Source: Oikopleura dioica
Lineage: Eukaryota > Animalia > Chordata
Reading direction: 5' to 3'
Length of the DNA: 64,000 nt
Assembly (NCBI GenBank): GCA_907165135.1
Contig: OU015568.1
Coordinates: forward strand, 13,144,001 to 13,208,000
The notes beneath the pieces are model-generated. The model made no database searches, was not told the origin of the DNA, and was given only the letters and a program-made list of their open reading frames with translations. A program made the translations under genes and the position numbers. Positions 3,251-20,929 of the stretch are shown here, piece after piece; the first letter of the stretch is position 1; each line of letters opens with the position of its first letter.

Positions 3251-4110
3251 CACAGAAAGCGCAGGATAATCGCTCCCTTTCGAGTGAAAGTCTGTTTCAA
3301 GTCTTGCAGGTCAGAGGGTGTGTCCGAATAGGCTACTAAGAAGAGCGATCCGATAATTTAACAACTCTGCCATAGACTGCTTATATCTTCTGGAATATAA
3401 TTTGACTACACGTCAATTATCGTCAAGATTATTTATAATAAGATCGTCTATAAAATCTATGCGGCTTTTTTATTTTTGCTTTTATTTAATTATGACGTCC
3501 GAAGCCAATTTAGTTTAATATTTATTTTATTGTCGCGAACTTTTTATGTGGCTTTTCTCCTAGAAGAATTATCTGATTTCCGTCGTGCTCACAGAAGCAG
3601 GATCCAAGGTCGTCGCCTAAAACGTAAATAAAAAATGACGGATGATGCGTTTTCTGGATAGAGTCGAGGAGACGTTTTTTACTTTTGATTGCCGAAGAAA
3701 AGACTTACCTCTTGTTGCTTTTGAATGTGTCTTGTTATGAAGTTTTCCCCACCCATGATGAGGATCAAAAAGATGATGAAAAACGGTACAAGCAAGAAAG
3801 GAACCACCTTCCACAAATGCTTTCGGTAGCATTTTTCGTCTTCTGCCGTTTCCTGGTAATAGTATGCACCTGAATATATGGTAATAATACGTTTACAAAT
3901 TAAATGTCTTGTAAATTTATCAAAAATGATGATCAGATTGATGATGAACATCTCAATTGTAGATTCTCAAAAATATTCTTACTTGGGCCGACTAAGGATG
4001 AGTGACCGCTGAAAATGCTCTGTCTTCTCTTTTGCTCCGGTACATTGACACTCGTATAAGATCCTTTTCGATTAACTCTCATTTCGAAGAAAATTCAATG
4101 TTCGGGTTTA

Positions 4111-4377
4111 GAATCTAGGACAAGGGATTAGCAGGCCGCTAAAAATAGAACGCGGCAGCGGAGCCTAGTCAACGGCAGCAGAGACTCCCAGGAAACGGCG
4201 GAAGGTGTCACAGGCGCGCGAGAGCATCTAGATTCAAGCGGGTGCCCCGAAATCACGCAGGTTCATTCCAAAAGGTTATAGCTTGAGGCTAAAACCTTAA
4301 ATTGGGAAACTTATATTAGAGACTTTTTCTCAGCAGGAGCATTACCAATAAGACTCCTACCTGATTCAAAAAGACTC
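4111..4377 (+). repeat. Split direct repeat A1 (267 bp)
   Basis: Identical by eye to 18272-18538; begins GAATC and ends GACTC. Confidence 0.97.
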
Positions 4378-4692
4378 TAAGGTAGACCATCAATCGATAC
4401 TACCGCTTATTTCACCTAAAGTCCAAGGACTATAAAAAAAAAAAAGGGGGAATTCCCTTCTTCAGAATCTAGAAGCGTATTCGGCCTCTTTGACTCACCT
4501 CTCAGAGCACGGGTTTCCTTCGAAATCGTCGAACGCTAAACCGACCCACCTTGGCTCCGCCAATCAGGTGCGCCGCGATTATTTCTTAAAAAAAAAAGAG
4601 ATTCAAACTGCGAGGAAAAAGAGAAATGAGCCGTTTCACTGCCGTTCCAGAATCCTTGACTCTCTCATCTTTTAAAACTCCCTTTTCAGACC

Positions 4693-7600
4693 ATGATCGA
4701 GAAAGCTTTCCTCGAGGCAGCCGAGGATTTTGCCCCGAAATGGGGAATAGCCCTGGATTCTGACCCGTCCAAGCCATTGGAAAATTCTGAAAGGAGAATC
4801 CAGACTCTGAACGAGACTGTGACCAGGAAAGGATCTTAAGCTCTCTCAGATTCTTAACTTCTGAAATCTTTTAATATGAAGAGAGTCTTATCCATCAAAA
4901 GAAATTCCCTGCTGCTTTCGAGTCAGGTGAACTGGAAAAGAATCTCACGCACATCCACAGCGAAGCCAAAGATTCAAACAAGGCTGATCAGACTCTACGT
5001 CCCGGCGGACGCGAATGAGCCACTCTCCAACCACAGGCTGGCCTTTGATCTTCAAGCCCCTTCAAAAGCGAAATTCAATTTCGCGGAGCTAGCATCCTGG
5101 ACAAAAATCATCTTCACTTCACCCATGGGTAAAGAGTCACTTTGGGCAGCGAACCCGCGCAACGAGCCCAGCTTCACTCTCGAGCAAATTGCTGAAGAAA
5201 TAGCTGAAGCAGAAAATGACTCCCCCGAAGATTGGAGCCTAGAGTCGAAGCCATTTCCCTTCAAACCGCTGCTCAGCCCAACAAAACTCCTGAAAAAAGA
5301 TGCCTCAGGCATGAGCGTAGAACCAAGCGTCAACATTACCGACTCAGAGACATTGGAGGAACTCCTGAAAGCCCTGAACATAGAGAAAGGCCCGTTAAGA
5401 ATCTTGGCCCGACGAGGAGACACACCAGCTTCAAAAGCCGCCCCAAAGCCTGACGAGAAGGGCAAACTCTATCCCACCAATGTGATGGAAGAATTTTCAA
5501 AATGGAACAAGCTGGTGAGCCAAGACTGGTTCCAAGCATGGGAAGACTCTGAAAACCAGAATGTTCTCAACAAGGGTTTCTGGCACCATGTCTGTCTCCG
5601 AGTAATCATGGAGGACAAAATCAAGGCTCAAGCAAATTACGAAAGACCTGAATTCCCGGATGAACACTGGCTCCAGAGACTCTTAAAAAAGGGACTGGAA
5701 GAAATCTTCAACGGACTCAGTTGCACAGAAGCAGACGCAAACCCGGCGGAGTTCTTTGACTCACTCAAACAAATGGAAGCGATCAACAGCGACTGGCGCG
5801 AGATCTGCCACCAGGAGAACGCCTGGTTGACTCTCAAGAAATACGGTGAAACGAAATGGGCAAGAAAGGAACCAGCAAATAAAAACAGCTGGATTCTGGA
5901 TGTTATTGGTGAATTCAGACTCGAAGACTCCGAACAACCGGTTCAGACTCCATTATCAAAAACCCTCACGCCACTAGTACTTCACCTAGCTCACCGACAG
6001 ATCTCAGAAGACTCAGTCATAAGCCAAGACGGAAGCTGCGAGATTATGCTGACTCAGTGGCACATAGAATGGCTCGAGCTCAAAAACAAGAAATCGCTGA
6101 AAAAATGGATTGAAGCAGCAGCAAGAAAGGTTGTCCCCATCAACACAACCGCCAGAATCAAAGAAATTGGGGAAGGGGATTCACATTGGATAATGTGGAT
6201 TCCATACAAGGTGATTCCGCAACTGTGGGTCTTCAATATTGGGAAAGATCAAATGCATCGAAGGGAGAAATCATTGCTCTCACTAGCAGCTCACCCAGGA
6301 CTCGCTCCGGAAGAATCAGAAGCGCTAAAGACTCTATCAGCCCAACCATGGACCGAAGAGAACGTCCGGAAATGCATCAGACAATTCCAAAAGCCCACCA
6401 GAAATTTCTACGCGTCAGGAAAAGCCTGCATTGTGGGAGTCAACCGCCCCTTCTCGACTCAAAAGGACATTCTCGAAATCATCGGGAAAATAGTCAGAGA
6501 CACAAAAGCTTGCCCTCAGTCCCGCTCAATAGAGCACAACCTCGGAGTCCTGACAGCTGGATGGAACTGGACAAGTGGCAAAAGATTCAGCCCAAACTCG
6601 ATTTTAAGATGCTTCATAGACAAATGGACTCAAAAGAGAGAAGAGATTTCCAAAGTGCCAAGACTCCAATTCCAGTGCGAAAAACTGGAAAAACGGAAAA
6701 GATCCTGCGAATGGCCGTTCTGCGGCGAAGCCGATGGAGATTCAGCCTGGTGCAGCAAACACCAGGAAGCACAGGAGATCAGAGAACTCAGACAGCCTCA
6801 ATGCACGGAAAGCTGCATGTCCAGAAATGGGATGTTCCAAAAAGGACTCTCAGGAAAGCGTCTCGAGATCGGAATCTCCAGCGACGAGTGGCAACAAATC
6901 TATGTCAGACTCTCAGAAGCCTTCAAAACCCCTAACCTAGCAGACCTTGACGCTGAGCTCATCCAAACCATCCAGAACACCACTGTTCACGGTTTTGACT
7001 CAGTAATAGAAGCATGGACATCGACAACGATCCTCTTCCAAGGGCAGAACGACTCCACAGCAAGCTTCAGAAAGCTCGAGGACTCCGAGAAATGGATAGC
7101 GAAAAGGCCACGTCAGGAGAAGCCAGAAGCGGCGGGAATCGTCATTTACCACGCTGGCCTTGCAAGATGCGGCAAAAAGTTTGACGCTTTCGTGGTAGGA
7201 AACAAAACGGCCGGAAGGAATCAGCACTTGGAGAATCTAGCGAAAGAAATCTCCAAGAAATCAGGAGATAAATGGCTCGAAGTAGCAGAGCTGATCAGCG
7301 AGCACACAAGATTCAAACACACGACTCTGCTCCTACCTTCATACGAAGACGCAAAAGAACTCCGACGGGCCTTGGTCGCCTGGGCAGCACCGTATGTTCG
7401 ATTCGTTACTCAGACTCTGGAAAAGGGCTTCTTATCGAACCTCAAAGGAGACCGAAATCAACGATATTCAGGATTCTGGGAAGTCTTCTCAATGGCTTGC
7501 GATGGAGACTATGAATCTAGAATCACACCTTGTTGGGGCCACCCAAGAGTGGCAGAATTCATGGCCAGAAGCTGCAACAACCTTGGGACAGCGAAAGAAG

Positions 7601-7872
7601 GAATCCAGAAAGTGGAAGGACTCAGAATCAGAGCCAACAGAACAACTTGGGAAGACGCGGAGTCAAAAAGACACAAACTAATGCCAAATACCCCTTTCTC
7701 GACTCACCTCCGGGACATCTTGCTGGACGGAATCAGAGCCGGAGAAAACCTCGACATGGAAGGGAACGAACGAGCCGGAGCAGAAAATTTCTTCCCCAAC
7801 GTCTGGACTCAAACACAACAGACTCTCGAAGATCGGATGGCACGACTAGAGCTCCTTAAAGCCGACAACTAG
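4693..7872 (+). CDS. Element gene A: ~1000 aa orphan protein with a Cys/His cluster
   Basis: Uninterrupted 998-codon ORF 4876-7872; probable short first exon from ATG 4693 (preceded by TTTTCAG|ACC), junction unresolved; motif CEWPFC-x9-CSKH; AATAAA near 7920. Confidence 0.8.
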
Positions 7873-8519
7873 ATTCAAATTCAGGAACGGACTCAAAGAT
7901 AAAATACTTTTAGCGTCAAAATAAATAAAAAATTGAGTCAAATTAGCCACCCCAGCCAAAACACTAGAATCAAGGAACAGGTTTACATGAATCTACCGAT
8001 TAAGGCAGCTGAGCGAGCCAAATTAAAAAAAAAGAAGAGAAAAATCTTATTGTAAACCTTCAAAAACAGCCAAAAACCCTTCCTCCTCTTCTTCTGACTC
8101 CCTACTGCCATCTTCTGGAATCCACAAAACGCACAAAAAGAATCCATTCCAGGCCAGGTCCAAGATATTTAAGCATAAAGAGTCAAAATAGCATTTTAAA
8201 ACAAGATCCGGGACCGTGGGAAAGTCTTTCCGCGACCCGAGAATCGGGGGCGCTGATTGGCTGGCGCGCGCGCCAATGGACAAAGGACGGGATCAAAAGC
8301 CAAATTCTCAGAAATTTTTCCATTTTCAAAGAATCAAGGATTAAAATCCCAAGAAAAAGAGAATCTCAGACGCAAAAGAAGCCAAACCAAAAAGAAAAAT
8401 TTAGCTTTTATTCCTGACTCGAAAATTGTTTCTAGATTCCCTTCCATCCCAAATTCTCCTGGCGCCAAAAATTTTTCCAATCCCCAGACTCTAAAACGAA
8501 ACTTTTTTCAGACTCAGAA

Positions 8520-11115
8520 ATGCCAAGAGACGCAGAAAAAGTCCAGATGCCCAGCGGGGATGAACTAGAGAGACTCCGAAACGAAGCTGGAATCGTCCAA
8601 GACCCCATCGGCGACGAAAACTTCTGGAGACAGAGAAAGTCGGCAATCAGATTCGACCCGGTGACGCAGAGACCGAACGAAAAGAAGGGCCGAATGCTCA
8701 ACCGGATGAGACGCAGAATCGCAGACAGATTCACGGATCTGCTGGAACAGATTCTCGAAGGAAAGGGTCCTCTTAATTTCCCAAGAATATTTAAAATAAA
8801 AGAAAAAGCTTTGATTAAAACTTCTTAAAGAAAAAGAAGGAAAAGAAATGACCCAAATTAAAGGATTCTCCGATCCAAACAGGCAGATGAGTCTCGACGG
8901 CTGGCAACTTGCGATCAACGGCGCTTCGAACGTTCTCTCGGATCTTATCCGAGAAGAAAACGGAAAGTTCAACGAAGACGACCAGAATCAGTCAGACGAG
9001 AGTCTTTTCTACGGATGCCTCAACACTGCCAAGACCACCATGGACATCCCACCGCTCCTCAACGTCGTCTACGTCGACAAAGACCGCCAGATTCCAGAAG
9101 GAAGACTCCCCGCCTACCAAGAGAGAGTTTCAGCTATCAAGGAATGGGTTCAAAAAATTCTAGAACTAAAAAACAAGAAACTTAGTACGCCTAATAAAAG
9201 GAAAGAAAAAGAACCCGAAATAAAGTCCAGAGCGGATTTCCTGTTCAGGAAAGATAGACTCCCAAAAAGAGGCGAAGACTCCCTCGAGTCCTGGAAGGAG
9301 AAGCGAAGAGATGAGTACATCAAAGACGGAGTTCCAGAGGACATCGCCAGAGTCCTGACCCGTCGAGACTCAGGAGTCATCGGTTGGACGTCGAGACGAG
9401 ATGGAACCTGCCAGACCGACAGTGTGGACGCTCAGCAGGCCAAGACTCAGCAGACTCAGACCAACTCAGGGACTGGTTTCGAAAACCCGAAACAGAAATA
9501 TAAGACTCAAATCAGTCAAAACTTGACTTCATAAATTCGGAAATCAAACCATTCAAAGACTCAAAAGACTCCGAGACTCAAACCGAGATGTCCAGCACCT
9601 CGATGGCGACCCAAACATCAGCGCCTGCGACGGAAACTGGAACAATTAGCGACACAGACTCAGAAGATTCTTTCAACGCACGCTCAGGAAAGGGTTTTTT
9701 GCCGGAAAAATAATCCCTTAAGACACTAACCCAGTTTTTTCACCATATATACAATAAGCCGGAAAAAACCTGAGAAAAGATCCAAACCAGTTCTTCCCTC
9801 CAGGCTACCAACGAAATGTGGCGCTGACGGATCAAGACTCCGGCTCCGACTCCGACGACCAAGCGATCAGAGAGTCCGACGACGAGGGAGACAACCAGGA
9901 CTGGAACCGACGCACCGATACCCTCTTCGCTTCAGCAGAAGAAGAGGCAGAGGCAAAAGAAAGAAGCGCGAGAATCGCCAAAGAAATGGAAGAACGCCAG
10001 GGCCAGCCACTGTCGGACATCATCGAGGAGTCTGAAAGCCGATCGCTGGAAAGAATGGCTCAGAAAGAAGAGGCGGAAGCTCAGCGACGAACTCAGAAGG
10101 CGCGCATCGACAGACTCAAGCAAGAAGCAGAGGCAGAAGCCCAGAGAGCAGCGGACAAAGCCAGAGCCAAAGAAGCCTTGAAGATCCAGATGAAGAGACA
10201 ACTGGACGAGAACACCAGAATCCGCCGGGAATACGCCGAGCAAATCCAGCGCGAAAAAGAGGCGAAAGAAGCTCAAGAAAGACGCATGGCTCGAGACAAG
10301 GAGGCAGAAGAAAAACGACTCGCTGCGATCAAGGCTGCAGAAGAAAAAGTCCTCACAGAGCCGAGAATTGGAATCAGACTCGTCGCGGAGACCGGAGCCA
10401 AAGGCAACTACTACTACCTCTCGAAGAAGGAATCCAAGCTGATGGAAAGATCCGCAGGAAAGGGCCCTTAGACTCAAAACAGTAGACTTCAAATCTAAAA
10501 ACTCTAAGAATCTTAATCCCAAACCAAAAAGAAAAAAGTCTTTTCTCACAAAACTTACATATCAGGGCCCCTTTAAAAGTTCGAGACATGCTCGACAACC
10601 GAAGCATCAGCAACTTCAACGAGGTCAAGCAAGCCTGGTTCAGCAGCACCGGACTCCAGAAGTTCAAAGACTCTCGACTCCCCGGCCACCGCCACTACAA
10701 ATACAACAACAGAAGCAGCTGGGAAATCAAGGAGGGAACCACGGAATGGAGACTCGACCCAATTGACTACCTCACCAAAGAAGAAAGAGCTGTCATCCAT
10801 TATGTGGTGGAGTTTTTAAACTATGAAGGAATCAAACGAAGATTCAAAGAAGCCATAGGTAAGACACACAAAATATAGAATCAAAAAAAAAGTAATAACC
10901 AGCAAAATAAGAGTCATAAAAACTTATGCAAATCTTTAGACTCTGGACTCCTCAAGCCAAAGAAGCTGGACGTCATCCTTCTCTTCGCGTACAAAATCTG
11001 TGGAAGTAACCTGGTCCACTACATGCGCTTCATCTTCGTCCGACTCTACAAGCTCCACGAGATTCCCATCCCTCCAGTGCACTCCGACGCTGCACCAAGA
11101 CCACCCAGATACTAG
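8520..11115 (+). CDS. Element gene B: ~702 aa, 6 exons, acidic linker plus E/A/K/R coiled coil, function unknown
   Basis: Exons 8520-8766, 8864-9475, 9559-9693, 9804-10463, 10580-10858, 10940-11115 join in frame (2109 nt); four GT-AG introns and one GC-AG intron. Confidence 0.7.
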
Positions 11116-11381
11116 AAGACTCAAGAATACAAACTGCCATGAAAAAAAAAAACCTCATTGATAAAAAACTGTTAAACTGACTCTTACTTCCCACTGAAAA
11201 AAAAAAGACTCTTTCACATTTTTAAATCAAAATTGACAGAAGCTGTGCTTAATAAATTAGCCCGATCTCACTAGAAGATCCTAGACTCTTTCTTGACTCC
11301 AAAATGAAGAGCATATTCAGAACCGTAAAAGAATAAATAATAAATACAAAGAAGCTTAAACTTTTTCGCTTTTCAGACGCA

Positions 11382-12850
11382 ATGGAATCGCAATATCTAA
11401 CACAAAAAGAAGCGCCTAATGCGCTAGAAATGCCATCGGATTCAGGGAGCGGCTACAAGAATCAATATTAAAATAAAAAGAAACTTAAAAAAGAGGCCAA
11501 AAAAGCCCTAAGCAGGCCTAAAAATCCTAAGCCAGTATAAAAGAGGATTCGAATGCGGAAGCACCCTCAGACGAACCATCCCAAGACTCATCCCCAGCAG
11601 CAGATGCAGGTGCAGCCGCGGGCGAAAACCCAGCGCAGATAGAACACTCAAGCGTCGACTTAGAGATGCTCAAAGGACTCGTCTGGGACATACAAAATAG
11701 TCTCAACACGAACGCAGCAGTCCCACCAAAAAGAATCCCATGCTACGGTTCGACTCTCGCCGAGAAATTGACGAATCTCGCAGCTGAAGCAACCAAGATC
11801 ATTGCAGAGTCACAGGAAGTGTCCAATAGCATCAGAAAGATTCTACAAGAAGCTGACAACGAGGGCCTCCAAGGGGCTCAAATGCTGGAAACCTTCCGCA
11901 CTATTGCCATACTGGCCCACAGCCCTTCGATCGGGATCAACCGCCGTCTAGCCTCAACCAACAAAGTCGACATAGAAAACATCCAAGACACGCTCGAACA
12001 CACAGTCAGACCCCTCGTCTCGGACCTTATGCGACAGGTTTACGAGAAAAGCGTCTATAACTCGGACGAAATCGCATTTTGGGCAAGAATGATGGAGCCA
12101 TTAGAAAGAGACTCGATCTCCAAACCGGATCTCCTCAAATTGGAAGAGGGTGTGGCATGGATTCTCCTAAGACTCTGGGGAGAGCCGGCGGAGGCCATCT
12201 TCAGAATGATTCTAGCGCAATGTAAGCCCCCAGAAGAATCGAACTCTCGGATATCGCCAAGACTCACAATGGTGGCCCACATTTGGAACTGCAGATTCAA
12301 GAAGATGCTCGGACGCCCGCCGGCGGAAAGACGAGCTTCTTTTGCAAACGAAAGGCAACTGTGTGCAACAATAGCGAATGCGATCTTCGGAGAAATCCAT
12401 TTCCAATTGACCAACACCAGATGCATCTTCCCAAGACTCCTCTCGAGTGCAGCCAGATCGGCCTGGACTCATTTGAACACAATCTTCGGGCCCGCGAACC
12501 CACTTAGCCTAACGCTCAGAAATTTTCTAACGAACATTGACGCGAATCAAGATTACACTGCGTGGGACGCGATTGGCACGCTGCGCAAACTATGGCCGCA
12601 TAGAGACGCAATTCCAGAGGCACAATACAAGACGCTGAACCTCAACGACATCGATAATCGGCTAGAAAAAGGACTCGAAGATCCGTCCTCACTCTACGGC
12701 ACCACGTACGAGAAGCTCTTCTGGAAAATTCCGATCCCAAGAAGCTATGAGTCTACCTACCCAGTCGCAGGACCCAAAAGAAAGAGACAAAAAACAGAAG
12801 ACGAAGAGCTGGAAGGAAATAGAGGCGGAAATGAAGATTCTCGCCAATAA
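11382..12850 (+). CDS. Element gene C: ~450 aa orphan ORF directly upstream of and in frame with pol
   Basis: ORF 11666-12850 is open upstream to ~11531; likely first exon from ATG 11382 (after TTTTCAG|AC), intron near 11450-11535 with an unresolved non-canonical donor. Confidence 0.7.
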
Positions 12851-15261
12851 AGGAGTCTTCAACAGACAAAAATCCCAATTATCTACCCTGTCACCATAAG
12901 CAACACAATCACAAATGGCCCAAAAACTTTACCAGAATGGAAAATCTACGAAACAGAACTGCTGCATAGAGTCATCAGAGTCTTAAACAACGAGGAAAAG
13001 CCAGATTGGGACAAATTAGCGCTGAAGAAAGAATCAGATTTCGTCTCAGGACTCTGGACACACAACAAAGACAACTGGAGGACACTTATCCATCAAATGC
13101 CAGAGAAAATACGGCCACTAATTTATCACTTTGTCCACGCGGGTGCCGACCTATTCCTGAACCTCAAACGGATCCCCCCGAAGAAACCGGAAAGATTCAA
13201 ACACAAAGAGCTGGTGACAATATGGAAGAGAAACGAAGCCAACACGGAAACTCTGAAAAAACTGGGTGGAAATTTTAAAACCTGGTACAATGATAGACTC
13301 AGACTCTCAAAATTCGTGCCACGCCCTTATGAGAAAATCGGTAAACGATTCAAGACTCTGTCCGTCCCGAGCCAAGAAGCAGTGAAAGAAAGGAACGAAG
13401 AAATCATCAACCAAATAACCGAGTGGTGCGACATGGGATCAATCTCAAGACTCACAGACTCGAAAAAATGCTGGATTCAGGCAGGATTTGTCCTCGTCGA
13501 TAAGCCAGGAAGGGAAACCAGAGTCTGCTGGAATGGTGGAGTCCTCAAGCCGCTCCAACTCTACACCTTTCCCTGCAAATTAGAAGGAGTCGGAGCAGCG
13601 ATTCAGATGCTAAAAAAGGGAGACCTACTCTTCAAATTCGACGATAAGAAGGGTAAGGAAACTCGGCCAAAAATCTATCAAATAACACCGAAGCCCTAAC
13701 CACACCTTAAGGTTTCCACCAGCTTCCGCTCAGCGAGGAAAGCAGGAAAATGGCATGCTTCGAATGGGGAGGCCAAGTCTTCAGAAACAACATCCTCGCC
13801 TTCGGAATCCCGGCAGCACCAGGAATCTATCAGCTCATGAATCTCTGCGGAGTCAACTTCCTAAGGAAAAATGGAGTCAGGATAACACTCTATCTAGATG
13901 ACAGACTCTTGGCAATCACACCAGACTCTGATAAAGAACGAAAAGAGCTCCTCACAGGCGAGAAAATAAGCAAAGAAGTCTGGGCTACAGTTGCGACTCT
14001 AGTGGCCCTTGGCGGATACGTCAACATAGCCAAGAGCACATTTACACCCACCCAGAGAATCGAATTCTTGGGTTTCATTCTGGACACAACCGAAGAAACT
14101 GTTGAAATACCGTTGCAAAGATGGGAAGCCCTCAAAACCCTTATGAAAGACGCAGAGGCCAAGAAAACGATCCAGACAAAAACGCTAGAAAGAATCAGAG
14201 GCACAATGGCGAGCATGGCAGAAGTACTGACAAACATGAGGATGCTTATTCGACAAACAACGATTCTCATCAGCCAGGCATTGAGAGAAGAAAAAGAAAC
14301 CTGCGCCCTTACAGAAGAGGTCAAAGAAGAATGGAGACTCTGGAGCCTGCTAGAAGAGAAAGGGCTCAAAAGACACTGGACAAAATTAAATCGCCAAGAG
14401 ACAGGCCTAATAATTTACACAGACGCATCCTCTCACGCGGGGGCCATCGTTATTGAGCAATGGAACTTAGAAGAAAGATTCGCTTGGGAACCAGATCTGG
14501 CAGACAAGCACATCGGGATCAAAGAGGCAGCGGCGATCCAATTCACTCTGGAATGGTACGGGCAGAAGCTGAAAGACAAAAGAATCCTATTTTTGTGCGA
14601 CAATGATAGTGTAGTCCAAGGTGTAATAGCCGGAAGCAAAGATCCGGAAATGAATAAGATTCTAGTCAGAATCTGGACTCTAGCGCAGCGCTCAAACATC
14701 GATATGAAAGTCGATTGGGTTAGCACCAAAAAACAACTTGCAGATGGCCCCTCAAGGAATTTAGACTCGCGAGAACAAAAACTAACGGCTGACGGATTCG
14801 CATATCTTCAATCTCACCTCTCGGACTCCTTGGACGTCGACGTGGCAGCAACGGTAAATTGCCTAAAGACTCGAACCAAATTATTTAACAAAATTCAGCC
14901 ACTGAACGCGAAATGCAGAGACTTCATCACGCGCAGAGAGACAAGAGGAGCTTTTGGAAAAGATTTCCTTAATTTCCCGATTCATGAGCTCATAGGAAGA
15001 AAGCTGTATGCATTCCCGCCTCCCAAAACAGCCCACAGATTCTATAACAGACTCGTAGAAATAGCCACGCCCTGGGCATTAGTTGTCCCCTGTTTCGAAT
15101 CAGAACCACTGGTAATCACAGAAGCCAGAATCAAGGGATACAGAATCTTCGACATCCCGGCTGACTCAATCCTCACCCCAGCAAAAGTTAAAACAGCCGA
15201 CGGCTACTGGAAAGTGGCATCTAACATCTCAACCATAAAAGTCGCCACAAACAGACTCTGA
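12851..15261 (+). CDS. DIRS-type pol: reverse transcriptase - RNase H - N6-adenine methyltransferase-like domain (3 exons)
   Basis: Removing intron 13653-13711 gives FKFDDKKG|FHQLPL...FEWGGQVFRNNILAFGIPAAP; YLDD; RNase H YTDAS...KEAAA...CDNDS...ADGPSR; removing in-frame intron 14854-14898 gives DVAAT|PLNAKCRDF...YAFPP...LVVP, the DIRS MT pattern. Start codon unclear (first in-frame ATG at 13097). Confidence 0.92.
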
Positions 15262-15447
15262 TATACCGATTCTGCCCCCTTTTCACACTCGACTCAAAAG
15301 GCCAGCAAGAATAGCCACTTCTGGCTCGTAGATTCTCCTAAAAAAAAAAAAACACCACTTACCCAACCTCACCACTATACTAAACTAGAAACAAAAGCCT
15401 TGGCGGTAACTCCTTCCTTTTTTTCAGACTCGAAATCCTTGGAAAAA

Positions 15448-16783
15448 ATGTCGGATCAGACCAAGACTCTCTCCAAGCTGCTGGCGGACCACACCAAGCT
15501 CACAGAGCAAGAGGCGAAGACACGAGCGGCAAGAGTCCAAATTTCAAAGGCCCAATTCTTCGAAATCGCTCAATCCAAGACGAGAACGGAAGAGGCGGAC
15601 AGACTCTTCATGGAAATCGAAGACATCAAGAAGGACATGTTGACTCACGACAAGTTCACCGACTCCCTCATCGTAAGTAGATGACTAGAATAAAATTCGA
15701 AACCCTCACCGCTTTTTCATAGGCGGAAATCGCGGAACTAGAGGCCAACCGCGACAAGAGTCTTGCGATCAAGGAAAACGAGCCAAACGCCAAAAAACGG
15801 TCAGAAGAAGATAACAAATTCTACGACCGTTGGAATCCAGCGGAGTTGGAGTCGAAAATCCGCCGGCTGATTGCGGACAAGATGGAGCGATACAGCCTCA
15901 AGGGATCCATGTTCGCCCAGATCAAGGCTCGAGAGTCAAAAATCGCCGAACTATCTTCAGGCGGCTCGGAAACTTCGGCGGTCTTCAAAGAAGTCGACCC
16001 GCTCACAGGAGAAGAGTCTTATTTCATGGTAAGTCCAGAAATTCAAAGGAAAATAACAAATGCACGCATACCAATAAACAGAAATCTATATAATTCCACT
16101 CAAAACACGCTTCAGACTCAAATAGGCACAAGCAACCTGCCTCAGGACGACGGCGACTCTCTTCGGGAAATGGGCAAGGAATTCCGAGCTTTCGTCTCAG
16201 ACGCGAAAAACCAGCGCACCTTCAAAAAGGACAAGCTCATGCGACTCCTGGGCAACTACAAAAGAGCCATGTCCCCAGAATACCCGGAGCGAGCAATCAT
16301 CGAAAGCATCTTGGACGAACTGATCAGGATGCCCGATATGACTCGAAAAGACGCGCTGCTCTCACTCACGGTAAGACTCGTAAAATAGCAACCCTGCTTT
16401 TAAAGCGTCGCATTCAGCCGCTCATGCGCCCGAACGTCCGACACAGCTTCGATCGCGCACTCACGATGAACACCAACCACCATGTCTTCAAGAAAATGAT
16501 CGGCAACCCCTGTGACGGCTCTGAAGACTGGCGGTCGGAAAAAGACTCGAAACCGGGTCGAGGACGCCGAGGTGGACACAATAACGGCGGTCAATCCAAA
16601 AAGCAAAAAACTGACCACCAAGGTGACGGCCAAAAGGCCAAGGACGGAGACAACGAGACTCATTCCGGAGGCCGCGGACGAGGCCGAGGCCGAGGCCGAG
16701 GTCGCGGAAGAGGCCGAGGCCGAGGAGGAGGAAATGCTGGTGGCGACACCAAGAAATTCCAAGATCAGGGTGGAGTCGAATAA
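15448..16783 (+). CDS. Element gene D: ~387 aa coiled-coil protein with a C-terminal RG/GR-repeat tail; Gag-like nucleic-acid chaperone candidate (4 exons)
   Basis: Exons 15448-15672, 15723-16028, 16116-16370, 16406-16783 join in frame via GTAAG...AG introns (50, 87, 35 nt); tail GGRGRGRGRGRGRGRGRGRGGG. Confidence 0.75.
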
Positions 16784-16943
16784 ACATCGCCACTGAAAGA
16801 AGCGCAACAAGCCAGAAATCTCAAACTAGCCGACTATAGACTCTCAGCTTTTTAGGACTCTTAAAAAAAAAACTGCTTCAAATGCTTAAATTCTCAGATA
16901 GATCTTCAAAGGAAAGGTCTCAAATTTTCAATTCTTAAGAACC

Positions 16944-18130
16944 ATGACCTGGCTCGACTACAAGAATCTCCTGGAACACTGGGAAGTAGCAGAAGCAATG
17001 GCCACGTTCAGTTACGACGAAGCCGAAATCGACGACGTGATTCAACACTTCCTCGACAGACTCCTCACAAGACCGACTCTCAAGGCCTACGCCTACGAGA
17101 AAGGGATCGTAACGATCCAGGACGTCATCGTTTCTCGACTCAAAAAACCGCTCACCCCGAAGCAAAAACGGAAAATAAAGACCTGGTGCGAGCACAGAGC
17201 GCGGGAGTCAGCAACCCAGACTCTGCAATACCCAAAGGTATAGAAAAAAAGGGAGACCCAGCCCGAAAAATAATACCCCTCCAAGCAAGCGGAGGTCGTC
17301 GACGAGCCCGAGGCAATCCGACTCTGGGAAGAGCTCCTGAAGACAAATAAGCCCAAGCCAAGAGAAGCGGCCATCGCTTTCTTCATCTGCTTTACGACGG
17401 GAGCAAGAATGAAAGAAGCGCTCAATCTCAGAGTCGAAGATCGAGAAGTCGTTACCGAAGACGGAAACGAATTTTGGCGATTCCATATTCGATGCAGCAA
17501 AACCGATCCGTTCTGCAAGCGAATGGAAACCCTCACCATCCCTATGGACATGCGGCATGGAGTCCCACTCGGCCTAGAACTTAGAGCCCAACTCAGGGAT
17601 CGAGATTCAGGTACTTATAGCACTTATTACTCAAGACTCAACAAGAAACTTTTTTAGGCCTTGTTCTCAAGACGCTCGAAGGCCATACTCGCATCGCATC
17701 TGACTACCTGGCGCGCTACGGAGCCAAGGCAAAACTGTCAAAAAAGGTAACCAATCAAGGAAGAAAACAAACCTCAGATTAATAAACGTCGTAGGTCTCG
17801 GCGCACACGGGAAGAGTCAGTTTCTACATCGAGGGACGCCGAACAGGCTTATCACAACAGACTCTAGCACACACACTCCGTTGGGCACCGGGAAGCTCCA
17901 TGCCAGACTACTACGAAAGGTGCTGGCTTGAATGTAGCAACTCAGGAGCGCCGGTCAGCGTGGCAAAATCTAGAGCCAGAAAACGAAACGACAGCACTAG
18001 CAGCGACCAAGACCAACCAAAGGTACTAACATTTAAAAATCCAAGAATCAATTATGAAAGGCCTTAGAGTCAAGAACGACCAGAAGCAAGTCAAAAGCCA
18101 AAGAAGCCGAAAAACACTGCTGAAGCATAA
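16944..18130 (+). CDS. Tyrosine recombinase, ~332 aa, 5 exons
   Basis: Exons 16944-17237, 17286-17610, 17658-17746, 17795-18022, 18068-18130 (GT-AG introns of 48, 47, 48, 45 nt) give TTGAR...RCSKTD...SAHTGR...LRW...PDYY, i.e. the R-K-HxxR-W-Y catalytic set. Confidence 0.92.
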
Positions 18131-18226
18131 AAAGAAAAAGAGGCCTTTTTTCCACTTTTAAACAGACTCGAATAAAAAAAAAAGACTCATTTTTACGATT
18201 GATGAGAATAACAAGAATGGTAGGGA

Positions 18227-18271
18227 GGGAATATTCCCATTACCATTGTTATTTATGCGTGATTATAATAC
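18227..18271 (+). repeat. Split direct repeat B1 (45 bp), abutting A2
   Basis: GGGAATATTCCCATTACCATTGTTATTTATGCGTGATTATAATAC is identical to 18670-18714; starts with the 12-bp palindrome GGGAATATTCCC. Confidence 0.95.
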
Positions 18272-18538
18272 GAATCTAGGACAAGGGATTAGCAGGCCGC
18301 TAAAAATAGAACGCGGCAGCGGAGCCTAGTCAACGGCAGCAGAGACTCCCAGGAAACGGCGGAAGGTGTCACAGGCGCGCGAGAGCATCTAGATTCAAGC
18401 GGGTGCCCCGAAATCACGCAGGTTCATTCCAAAAGGTTATAGCTTGAGGCTAAAACCTTAAATTGGGAAACTTATATTAGAGACTTTTTCTCAGCAGGAG
18501 CATTACCAATAAGACTCCTACCTGATTCAAAAAGACTC
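18272..18538 (+). repeat. Split direct repeat A2 (267 bp)
   Basis: Identical by eye to 4111-4377. Confidence 0.97.
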
Positions 18539-18669
18539 ACCCACCCACCATCCCTGAAATAAGCAGTACAAGTAGGGTAAATCGAGCACACGCCCTACAT
18601 ACTGCCCAGTCCTAACCTTAGAATCTCAGCGGAGCTTCTCTTACCACAGTATTGTAATTGCGCGTGCTC

Positions 18670-18714
18670 GGGAATATTCCCATTACCATTGTTATTTATG
18701 CGTGATTATAATAC
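18670..18714 (+). repeat. Split direct repeat B2 (right terminus of the element)
   Basis: Identical to 18227-18271. Confidence 0.95.
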
Positions 18715-20929
18715 TTTGATTGGTATAACTAATGAGACCACCGAAACTTGCGTTAATAGTTCTAGCAGGTGCTCGTAAACTCAGACTTGACTTTTATGAC
18801 GAGAGACTTTCGATGGATCTCTCTAACATTGTGTCATGCCATCTTACTTTTTGTAAACAAAAAAAAATAATTTATGTTGTTTTACGATTTATCAGCTGCT
18901 CTTGGAGAGTTTCGAATTCGATATCTTCTGCTTATAAAAGCTGTAAAAATAGATATAAGTTGTCAGAAGATTGCAATCAAAAGGTTAAAAATGATAAAGG
19001 ATCAAGTAAAGGTGCACCTCAAAAACCTCAGCTTGGCACAAGCTTCTCAAAGTTATACTTCGGTTTCAACTCTTAAGCTCTCCTGGGTATCCAATGTGCA
19101 TATCGGACCTTGCCAGGTAACTTACCCCTCCCACAAGAGCTACCCAATCTAGGTAACGTTGAGCGCGCTTCTCGTGCGGTAAGAAGCTTTCAGTCTTATT
19201 GAATGCAGCTGTAATGAGTATCAATGAACAGAAAAGGAGTAATCTCTGGCAAACTGAATAATTGCCCACAAATGACCGAAATCTCCCTTTTCTATTTTGA
19301 ACATTCTTTTCTAAAGCATCGAGTTTCGTAAAATTCTAAAGAGTTGGAATCGGACTCACGTGCTTGTCGACCAACCGGTCGTTTCAAACGCCGCCCATTA
19401 TCGATTACGCGTCGGATTAATACGCCATTTCAGAATTATGATCTCACAGCCGTAATCGAAGACTTGCTTATCCCTTTAACGTCAAATGTAAGGAAAACTT
19501 GATCCGTTTGGAAGTAAATCCGAGGTTACCGTAAGCCTAAATTTAAGGATCGAGTCTATTTATTCAAGGACAGCAAGAATAGTATAACGGTAAAAATTAA
19601 AATAACGCTGAAGGCTCATAAAAGAACGGATCAGAATGATATTTATCTCAAACGAAAAAGAAAGAAACAAAATACGATTGTTTTTGTCTGTGTTGTTAGT
19701 CTACCTTGAAGGAGATTCGAGCTCCTGCGTAATGAGCATGTAAGCTTGGAGACGGAAGTGGTCAGCTCAAAGTATTTCCAGCAACAGGTTCCCTAAGAAC
19801 GCGCCAGGATCATCTGAGACACTTCAGAATCTCGTGATTATCAAAATTGAAAGAATGTGTATAGAGTTTCATTTCATGAACCATTCTAGCGCAATTAATT
19901 TGGTGCGAACTTGCTGTTCACAAAGCACAAATCTCGCAGCAAATCTGGCAGCACGTGACTAGTGGCCTCCGATAGAAGGTGTTAGAATCGGCGCAGAGAA
20001 GAAGCTTATCATTATCCTGGTCAATACAATAATTCCTCTTCGAGTCTTATCCGGCACTAGCGTTCATCCTGCAATTCGTTAGAAACGCGTGAGATTTTTA
20101 TATCCGCGCTCTTGACGAAAATCTCAATTATTGAAGCAGCAATAACCTATCTTCTATCATCATCATATAGTCTATGCTTTCTTGGTTTTATTGAAAGAAA
20201 TATTTGAGAAAATAGGAAAATATTTAAATCTAATAGTCTAATAAAAGAATTACTTAGAATCTTTCTTTCAGATAATATTCAAAGAGGTATACGTTCAAGT
20301 AATTTTATAGGATTCAAATTATAAGAAATTAATTTCGGAAACAATAATTTAAAAATTTCAAACGAAATTCGACAAATGAATAAGTGTCAAAACAGAGATT
20401 TGCTATATTGATAGTCCATCAATGATAGAGAAGAGTTTTTGAATAAATTAATTGACAGTGCATTGAACTTTCTGAGTTCTTCTGAAATGCTCTTTCAAAG
20501 AAGTTGAACTTTCACGGGTTCAGGCTTTATCAGAAGAATCGTAGATGGCAGTCGCGCACTGGTGCTTGTGGTGGTGCGCCACCACCATTTACTACTCTTC
20601 AGAAAACAGAAGGAGAATAAAAAACTAACTCAATAATTTGCATTTCTAAAATCGTTAATCAACTCAAGTTCCACGATGAAGTGGAGCCTCTTTTTGCTTT
20701 TTGCTCTGATAAATTTATCGGAAAGTCTTACCAGACGAGAAAGAGAACAACGGGTAACATAAAGAAAATGAAAAATCAATAAAAAGTAAAATATTGTTAA
20801 GAGAGCTAAAAGAAGACAAGCGAAAAAGGAGAAACAGGACAAGAAGAGCCATTTGTTTGGATACCACGGTAATGACTGTTCTAACACGAGTTAAACTTTG
20901 ACTTTTCGAAGCCTAAATTTTGCATAGAT

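Follow-up and report, generated by a model that had tools for sequence, protein, structure and literature searches.

In the 64,000-nt stretch of the Oikopleura dioica genome analyzed here (contig OU015568.1, positions 13,144,001 to 13,208,000; hereafter the window), we observed that a mobile element is saturated over its full length with the interrupted palindrome GANTC. The element, a complete PAT-like split-direct-repeat tyrosine-recombinase retroelement, occupies window positions 4111–18714 on the plus strand (14,604 bp), and its polymerase protein (Pol) joins a reverse transcriptase (RT), an RNase H (RH) and a methyltransferase-like (MT-like) domain. The initial annotation had proposed here a retrotransposon that may mark its own DNA by adenine methylation at GANTC. 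Comparison with related elements suggests a lineage-specific, dyad-symmetric "barcode" rather than a fixed GANTC/adenine system, and the saturation with one palindrome is indicative of a hitherto undescribed mechanism by which mobile elements could be recognized as "self".

The whole element contains 266 GANTC sites (265 of them within 4111–18538), which corresponds to ~18 per kb or about one per 55 bp, against ~4.4 per kb in the flanking host DNA. In 1-kb bins we count 11–25 sites each inside the element and 0–8 outside, and the seven hand counts from which the idea arose (10, 14, 10, 10 and 15 in subwindows of the element, 2 and 3 in host DNA) are exact. In 300 dinucleotide-preserving shuffles, 91.2 ± 8.7 sites are expected, giving an observed-to-expected ratio (O/E) of 2.92 and a z-score of 20.1. 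All four variants are enriched relative to such shuffles, with 123 copies of GACTC (5.0-fold), 38 of GAGTC (2.8-fold), 49 of GATTC (2.4-fold) and 56 of GAATC (1.7-fold), and the extended form AGANTCT is found 50 times where 8 are expected. The control words GATC, GANNTC, GANTG and CANTC stand at 0.60–0.84 times expectation in the element. Among all 256 patterns of the form XYNZW, GANTC is the top outlier with a z of 18.4, the next pattern reaching 6.2, and in host DNA the same scan gives an O/E of 0.80 for GANTC. Over 82 kb of host flanks (from the window and the related loci L001–L004 and L009) we find 355 GANTC sites versus 428 expected (O/E 0.83), with GCNGC at 1.31. The sites are spaced more evenly than random positions, with a coefficient of variation of 0.77 compared with 0.98 ± 0.06.

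An explanation of this density as a by-product of base composition, of codon or dipeptide usage or of internal repeats has some initial appeal, since the coding strand of the element is A-rich and T-poor, with a step in composition at both element ends, and the element has its own codon usage. Codon-order shuffles moreover retain fewer GANTC sites than synonymous shuffles do, so the protein sequence accounts for a portion of the signal. The excess nevertheless exceeds both dinucleotide and synonymous shuffles, with z between 4 and 20: synonymous-codon shuffling leaves 28.5 ± 3.6 of the 59 sites in open reading frame 1 (ORF1; z 8.5) and 13.3 of the 29 sites in the RT-RH-MT reading frame (z 6.6). 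Sites occupy all three codon phases, and their density is 12–23 per kb throughout the ORFs, the inter-ORF spacers, the 5′ untranslated region and the terminal A repeats, so that non-coding DNA is as dense as coding DNA. Sister families of the same composition do not carry the motif, and no internal repeats beyond the terminal ones were found in the element. These shuffles and sister-family backgrounds refute the by-product explanation, and the earlier claims that the sites ignore codon frame and coding status and are unlikely to reflect one codon bias hold.

Three further candidates were rejected. A reading of AGACU by machinery of the N6-methyladenosine (DRACH) type fits poorly, as C comes next after 74 of the 83 AGACT words, enrichment extends to the other central variants, and the word of a sister family described below contains no RAC. 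The AP-1/GCN4 site TGA(C/G)TCA is excluded because T precedes just 25 of 265 GANTC sites. Nor does the motif appear to be an integration target of the recombinase, as the host flanks of five insertions lack GANTC and share only 0–5 nt of microhomology with the start of repeat A.

To place the motif in a wider context, related loci were fetched and scanned for enriched patterns; ~18,000 patterns were tested, ~2% of which are palindromes, and 12 null simulations gave maximum z-scores of 4.3–6.3, with no palindrome ever ranking first. Family A comprises the window element and L009 (Pol 97–99% identical to the window), and its word, GANTC, recurs in family A2 (L001; Pol 83% identical to the window), with 282 copies versus 99 expected (z 18), and in a fourth family, L016 (Pol 58–63% identical to A, A2 and B), at 17.8 per kb. 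Family B (L002 and L005, with L017 from a marine metagenome; Pol 61%) has no GANTC excess (O/E 0.9–1.0) despite an MT-like domain as intact as that of the window. Instead, it is saturated with GCNGC, present 226 times versus 86 expected (z 15), and with the extended AGCNGCT (55 versus 8). In family B, GCNGC runs at 10–21 per kb across the element and at 1–5 per kb in host DNA, and the excess survives synonymous shuffles (z 4–8). Its origin from a CAG-type microsatellite was rejected, only 12 of 224 sites lying in a 3-nt register. The equally intact MT-like domain of family C (L003, L004, L018 and L024; Pol 61%) likewise comes with no GANTC excess, which undoes the earlier tie of GANTC to the MT domain as such. 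Family C has no saturating palindrome at all, only the strand-specific AAGCC/AANGCC at ~2.5–3-fold; AAGCC occurs 113 times versus 12 for its complement, and GAATGG is also in excess (L003 1000–16016, L004 1–15228).

More distant relatives extend the pattern. Family D, a distant marine relative represented by one element (L019/L021; Pol 34–38%), is saturated with CTNAG in all four variants (O/E 4.3, z 15–17, 18–20 per kb). Family E (L006/L007; Pol 38%) carries the palindrome TCCNNNGGA in 36 dispersed copies versus 5.3 expected (z 13). L008, L014, L020, L022, L023, L025, L028, L029 and L033 (Pol 25–38%) show no pattern above the null, and a weak palindrome in the small canonical DIRS elements L010/L011, TCNNNGA, was not counted because its z of 5.5 lies within the null range. 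When the 16 interrupted palindromic pentamers of the form XYNY′X′ are compared, exactly one is elevated per family: GANTC 2.9-fold in A, GCNGC 2.4–2.6-fold in B and CTNAG 4.3-fold in D. The remaining pentamers stand at 0.5–1.7-fold, and the host values are 0.83 for GANTC, 1.31 for GCNGC and 0.89 for CTNAG. With the sister families as background, GANTC is enriched 5.4-fold (z 44) and AGCNGC likewise 5.4-fold. The level of saturation is alike in unrelated lineages, at 14–20 sites per kb. The O/E matrix gives no indication that families avoid each other's motifs. In the Pol tree the motif-bearing lineages are scattered, and the pairs B/C and D/L020 differ in motif state. Because L016 also carries GANTC, the O. 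dioica clade may have had this word ancestrally, family B having switched to another and family C having lost it.

The saturating words are palindromes far more consistently than the small share of palindromes among the tested patterns would lead one to expect. Palindromes are among the three highest-ranked patterns in A and B (at rank one or two in every copy) and lead the ranking in D and E; the best patterns of four independent lineages include GANTC/AGANTCT, AGCNGCT/GCNGC, CTNAG and TCCNNNGGA. After dinucleotide correction, the flanks in family B are symmetric as well, with A at −1 enriched 1.65–1.75-fold and T at +5 enriched 1.6–1.9-fold. The central base, by contrast, has a strand preference: C in A, A in B and T in D. 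The reader of these sites, if there is one, thus appears to see a dyad-symmetric core but the two strands unequally; the asymmetry fits an enzyme-like monomer on duplex or hybrid and equally fits single-strand reading on RNA and cDNA.

The sites have turned over as the families diverged. Families A and A2, which are 71% identical in DNA, have 123 of 260 aligned GANTC positions in common; these 47% compare with a mean of 29% over four-base patterns (rank 4 of 195). In aligned pol DNA, elements with the same motif have 23 of 41 and 24 of 30 sites in common, whereas the GANTC sites of A and the GCNGC sites of B coincide in only 1–2 columns, which is the chance level. Because they lie in different alignment columns, each lineage has built several hundred sites at new positions, and a concerted conversion of homologous sites from GANTC to GCNGC can be discarded.

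Taken together, the specific pentamer, the even coverage, the similar density, the different words of sister families and their independent accumulation argue for selection for reader sites, and maintenance by selection rather than mutation is most likely. Because the motif differs between sister families in the same genome, we favor a reader that is encoded by the element: with a probability that we place slightly below an even chance, the motifs are dispersed recognition sites for a co-evolving, element-encoded, sequence-specific reader. Selection would then shape the whole element to one dyad-symmetric pentamer per ~55 bp. The pentamer is a property of the element lineage: three families, that of the window element included, have GANTC, a sister family has GCNGC and a distant marine relative has CTNAG. 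The element machinery would attach to its own nucleic acid over the full length and might also modify it chemically; the integrated copy, double-stranded cDNA or a hybrid of RNA and DNA could be the substrate. Host DNA and co-resident families would be ignored by this reader, whose specificity would change over time together with the sites. In the literature searched we found no description of palindrome saturation for any DIRS, PAT or Ngaro element, and no work that ties retrotransposons to GANTC in a comparable way or N6-methyladenine (6mA) in DNA to Oikopleura.

A reader could also come from the host, if each family recruited a different protein, for instance a dimeric transcription factor or a chromatin protein, to promote its expression, insulate it or help it evade silencing. 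Dimeric DNA-binding proteins typically have short palindromic sites, and a dense cluster would stand out in a host genome in which GANTC is slightly under-represented. Such recruitment would need three or four factors with 2-N-2 sites, each used 15–20 times per kb over 5–15 kb including coding sequence; known regulatory clusters are local rather than element-wide, and no candidate factor was identified. We regard recruited host factors as improbable.

Somewhat less probable still is a sequence-specific mutational or repair bias tied to the replication of the element, resembling very-short-patch repair, that turns near-cognate words into the motif and requires no function of the sites. Words one mismatch away from the motif are mildly depleted in A (pooled O/E 0.90, with GANTT at 0.53 and CANTC at 0.67) and in D (0.73), and the two A families differ at about half of their sites, which indicates high turnover. 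In family B, however, these neighbors are not depleted (1.03). A bias of this kind would still require a sequence-specific, lineage-specific reader, the even spacing and the positional conservation between A and A2 suggest selection, and we know of no eukaryotic precedent.

More serious, though still unlikely in our estimation, is the possibility that the words are read on single strands, the genomic RNA, the cDNA or both, by a Gag-like or other protein of the element (ORF3, or ORF5 with its Arg-Gly-rich tail) as dispersed packaging, coating or nuclear-export signals. The core would then be palindromic because the same word must be read on the plus RNA and the minus cDNA. Strand bias of the central base and the 5′ flank persists in non-coding DNA (GACTC over GAGTC, AGCAGC, CTTAGA), family C has only its strand-specific word, and coverage is even, at one site per 50–65 nt. 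The unspliced RNA is needed as template while pol needs splicing, which makes an RNA-marking or export device plausible, and the closest solved folds of the MT-like domain act on RNA. Against single-strand reading, all four central variants are enriched, complements included, the flanks in family B are symmetric, and palindromic cores in four lineages are hard to reconcile with plus-strand reading alone. A Pfam search identified no RNA-binding domain in any ORF of the element.

Returning to an element-encoded reader, the only proteins with recognizable domains in all motif-bearing lineages examined are Pol (RT-RH-MT) and the recombinase. Modules with a methyltransferase fold are known for recognizing short palindromes with an interrupted core, and the MT-like domain is therefore the leading candidate, to which we assign roughly half of the probability given to an element-encoded reader. 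The domain spans 14773–15258 on the plus strand and is interrupted by a 45-nt intron (14854–14898), extending beyond the interval of 14830–15130 first proposed. A conserved DIRS block, D..A..N ... Y-x-F-P-P, aligns it with 27 DIRS-like relatives (28 sequences in all), which supports the initial assignment of the end of pol to the DIRS MT domain; D23, P67 and P68 are invariant in this alignment. Nineteen of the 28 sequences match PF05869 (Dam) weakly (best E 1.4e-6) and 10 of the 28 match PF12237 (PCIF1 family). The window's own domain has no direct match to either profile, and its tie to PF05869 holds through the alignment only.

The AlphaFold model of the domain, with a mean predicted local distance difference test (pLDDT) score of 95.4, confidently places it among class-I methyltransferase folds. 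The top solved structures found by Foldseek are PCIF1/CAPAM, with template modeling (TM) scores of 0.68–0.70 and an E of 4e-5, and KsgA/Dim1 and Erm follow, all matches lying at a TM of 0.5–0.7. These nearest folds are all adenine-N6 RNA methyltransferases. Although the cap-specific adenosine-N6 methyltransferase PCIF1/CAPAM is the best structural match, identity is ~13%, the element domain has no counterpart of the helical and WW regions of PCIF1, and the profile-to-sequence match is not significant (E 0.24). The catalytic motif of PCIF1 is NPPF, and the corresponding motif IV of the element is F-P-P.

Motif IV of the window domain reads Y-A-F-P-P-P, with the Phe codon at 15013. The caveat that this is AFPP rather than N/DPPY extends to the whole alignment: Phe or Tyr, and never Asn or Asp, precedes Pro-Pro in 28 of 28 sequences, which departs from (D/N)-P-P-(Y/F/W). 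Because Phe replaces the catalytic Asn/Asp, a binding module or a non-canonical enzyme is more likely than a classical N6-adenine methyltransferase. This bears directly on the strict form of self-marking, in which the domain would be an active N6-adenine DNA methyltransferase that targets GANTC and marks the element DNA or its circular intermediate. GANTC is the target of the known adenine methyltransferases CcrM and M.HinfI. Also consistent with methylation are a fold nearest to adenine-N6 enzymes, the relation of the domain to phage Dam, the enrichment of all four GANTC variants, and a preference for adenine at −1 (A, B) or +5 (D) that puts an adenine near most sites, even GCNGC.

Several observations weigh against adenine methylation in addition to motif IV. 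Family B has GCNGC, with no fixed adenine, and family C no palindrome, both with the same intact domain. Neither pol nor the other ORF pieces match the Pfam family of β-class N6/N4 methyltransferases, to which CcrM and M.HinfI belong. According to a 2026 preprint on DAM-TEs (retrotransposons with Dam-like domains derived from prokaryotes), DIRS DAM domains expressed in Escherichia coli gave no 6mA, DAM-DIRS are not linked to the host 6mA enzyme AMT1, metazoans are described as being without abundant 6mA and AMT1, and the DAM domains of eukaryotic transposable elements are without the N-terminal catalytic and recognition halves (bioRxiv 10.64898/2026.05.21.726589). That preprint treats the same domain family fused to pol and discusses a retained "catalytic pocket"; it reports Asn-Pro-Pro as nearly universal in DAM-TEs, in contrast to the Phe/Tyr-Pro-Pro of the sequences aligned here, and no target sequence for DAM domains is reported. 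A term search of the preprint found no mention of Oikopleura or GANTC, and its sections read here do not discuss motif enrichment in elements (bioRxiv 10.64898/2026.05.21.726589). Some form of self-marking or self-recognition, as the initial annotation proposed, is favored by the different motifs of sister families within one genome; its specific version, methylation of the GANTC adenine, is weakened, and we consider it improbable.

The broader picture, in which appendicularian PAT/DIRS-like elements would carry a switchable 2-N-2 palindrome barcode every ~55 bp that is read by an RT-fused MT-fold domain of co-evolving specificity, is put forward only as a tentative and on balance unlikely one. 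Several points count against an element-encoded reader with the MT-like domain as its leading candidate. The same MT-like domain with F-P-P occurs in family C, L020, L033 and others, which show no palindrome saturation; its presence is therefore not sufficient. Between families with different motifs, the MT-like domain is not unusually divergent, at ~55% identity (judged by eye) compared with ~61% for Pol overall. A purely symmetric duplex reader does not explain everything, as it appears to leave the central-base strand bias unexplained: in non-coding DNA of the window element, the sense strand has GACTC and GAGTC at 27:5, and in family A the flanks are uneven, with A at −1 enriched 1.4–1.5-fold and T at +5 only weakly, 1.1–1.3-fold. 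Motif positions received 6 of the 69 substitutions between the window element and L009 versus 7.3% expected, a neutral rate. Purifying selection between these two 99%-identical copies was rejected as a test on the same figures, since neutrality is expected after insertion and the comparison is uninformative. Finally, selection and a motif-creating mutational or repair bias cannot be separated by sequence alone, and the link between protein and motif is one that we infer.

The three saturating pentamers belong exactly to the class of interrupted 5-bp palindromes recognized by type II restriction–modification systems, GANTC, GCNGC and CTNAG being the sites of HinfI, Fnu4HI and DdeI. The element proteins differ from type II, CcrM and M.HinfI enzymes in that no sequence relation was found and in their eukaryotic nuclear context, and bacterial genomes generally avoid type II sites or are neutral toward them instead of accumulating them three- to fourfold. 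One analogy is offered by bacterial uptake signal sequences and DNA uptake sequences (USS/DUS) and Chi, which are short, evenly spread self words that differ between lineages and are read by a dedicated protein. By the measure applied to such self words, GANTC has an O/E of 2.9 inside the element, 0.83 in 82 kb of host flanks and 0.9–1.0 in sister families. USS/DUS and Chi differ in being 8–12 nt long, strand-oriented or non-palindromic, and genome-wide, whereas the words described here are 5–7-bp palindromes confined to an animal mobile element. Packaging signals of RNA viruses of the MS2 type offer a second analogy, with many weak, lineage-specific sites ~50–60 nt apart that are embedded in coding sequence. 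MS2-type signals fold into stem-loops that present a loop motif on one strand; the unit in the elements is just a palindromic pentamer, enriched in each of its central variants.

The literature searched describes the DIRS MT domain as one of unknown function, and the DAM-TEs preprint found neither a target sequence nor an activity for it (bioRxiv 10.64898/2026.05.21.726589). The elements appear to display candidate targets for it, three 5-bp palindromes in three lineages at 2.4–4.3-fold each, which make its function directly testable on three natural domain variants. If the barcode reading is true, the domain would serve private recognition or modification of each family's replication intermediate, which would give the DIRS MT domain a function and represent the first self/non-self code in a eukaryotic transposon. 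From the saturation it would seem that families living in one genome each reserve their machinery for themselves. Whatever the role of the MT domain, motif saturation that spans the element and differs between lineages is a novel type of constraint on how transposon sequences evolve: sites arise by the hundreds at non-homologous positions, in part at a cost to protein sequence. A single palindrome at z > 12 also provides a simple signature by which elements of this kind could be found and classified in genomes and metagenomes.

The element limits follow from its repeats and from a second copy. Repeat A1, the terminal direct repeat, spans 4111–4377 (plus strand, 267 nt), starts with GAATC, contains six GANTC sites and is 100% identical to repeat A2 at 18272–18538 (plus strand). 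The 45-nt repeat B1 (18227–18271, plus strand) directly adjoins A2, begins with the 12-bp perfect palindrome GGGAATATTCCC and contains no GANTC; repeat B2 (18670–18714, plus strand), with the same sequence features, forms the true 3′ end, so that the end at 18538 given by the initial annotation falls short of it. L009, a copy at another chromosomal site of O. dioica, aligns exactly over 4110–18715 and is 99.2–99.4% identical. Because this second copy is so similar and has the same limits, the family is young and probably active. The B1|A2 junction reproduces internally the two ends of the element joined together, and the layout A1...B1-A2...B2 is also present in L001, L002, L005 and L009. Repeat B is 87–92% conserved across families A, B and C, compared with only ~65% identity for pol DNA, and with GGGAATATTCCC it is a candidate recombinase-binding or circle-junction site. 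We compared the 3′ junctions at window 18715, L001 15513, L002 15081 and L005 14635. In three insertions the first 3–5 nt of repeat A recur in the host DNA right after B2 (GAA, AGAAA, GGAAA), and no such microhomology follows B2 in the window copy or L009; the recurrence hints at short crossover homology for integration. The host genes flanking the element encode, by Pfam, Dna2, Pre-SET/SET, LRR and COX15 domains, and no Oikopleura element that is without an MT domain lies within the 64-kb window.

The pol gene (13097–15261, plus strand) encodes 686 amino acids after removal of two spliceosomal introns, one in the RT (13653–13711) and the other that of the MT-like domain given above. The RT intron shifts the frame and contains a stop, so that its removal is needed to read Pol. 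The spliced product agrees with the annotated O. dioica protein P0001 at all but two residues and has no internal stop, and the window Pol ORF is 97% identical to an annotated O. dioica protein (OKI2018_I69 chr1). YLDD lies at 13891 and the RNase H motif YTDAS at 14416. Lacking its first exon, the window ORF matches RVT_1 with an E of 7.6e-6 and 26.2 bits, just under the gathering score of 29.6, and Pol homologues carry PF00078. The intron positions are the same in other families, and both introns are kept in every copy, from which it follows that the reverse-transcribed template is unspliced RNA.

Six syntenic ORFs, namely ORF1, ORF2, ORF3, Pol, ORF5 and the tyrosine recombinase, are all conserved in three O. 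dioica families. ORF1 (4876–7872, plus strand; 998 amino acids, 59 GANTC) is an uninterrupted orphan protein with no Pfam or PDB sequence match and no Foldseek match below an E of 0.2 from a poor AlphaFold model (pLDDT 47). Its homologues number only 14 among 1.84 billion representatives and are found only in the Oikopleura clade; on these grounds we set aside ORF1 as a recognizable DNA-binding or enzymatic protein. It is syntenic in families A, B and C at 25–60% identity. ORF1 is also the fastest-evolving ORF of the element (25–28% identity between families), and for the twin copy L009 the OKI2018 annotation calls a gene only for its last 126 codons. The ORF2 region (8519–11114, plus strand; coordinates mapped through the alignment) corresponds to a spliced gene model of 676 amino acids in L009, and pieces of it are conserved in L001–L005. 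ORF3 (11666–12850, plus strand; 394 amino acids) lies directly upstream of pol, the position of a Gag-like gene, and is ~42% identical in families B and C. Downstream of pol, the ORF5 region (15443–16775, plus strand; also mapped) corresponds to a 382-amino-acid gene model in L009. Its end, at window 16640–16780, encodes an Arg-Gly-rich repeat tail through GAGGCC-type repeats, possibly a nucleic-acid-binding tail. The tyrosine recombinase gene (16937–18128, plus strand) has a 333-amino-acid gene model in L009; the window piece matches PF00589 weakly (E 0.028), orthologues in L003 and L004 match the same profile, and identity across families is 46–90%. No Pfam match to an integrase of the rve (DDE) type was found in the element ORFs.

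In its RT, RNase H, MT-like domain and tyrosine recombinase, arranged in the usual order, the element resembles PAT-like tyrosine-recombinase retrotransposons of the DIRS order, and its A1...B1-A2...B2 repeats with the internal copy of the joined ends are those of PAT-like elements. DIRS1-like elements, which are already recorded in O. dioica, are described in a 2011 overview as smaller than 6 kb with three ORFs (PMC3266345). At 14.6 kb and with six syntenic ORFs, the element described here is more than twice the stated size, and it differs from known DIRS-order elements in its conserved spliceosomal introns inside pol. It thus belongs to a known retroelement order but is a marked variant, giant, with six ORFs and introns in pol. 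Among the marine metagenome relatives, L006, L008 and L014 are contigs of 20–25 kb with ~20 same-strand ORF fragments each. L008 (4500–22000) also carries 28 copies of the strand-specific CTT(A/T)AAGGAG at irregular intervals, which resembles a repeated gene-start or promoter signal and not a saturating pentamer. The 3′ flank of the element in L003 (16100–23625) contains a TCACCT-type tandem repeat of ~28 hexamer copies.

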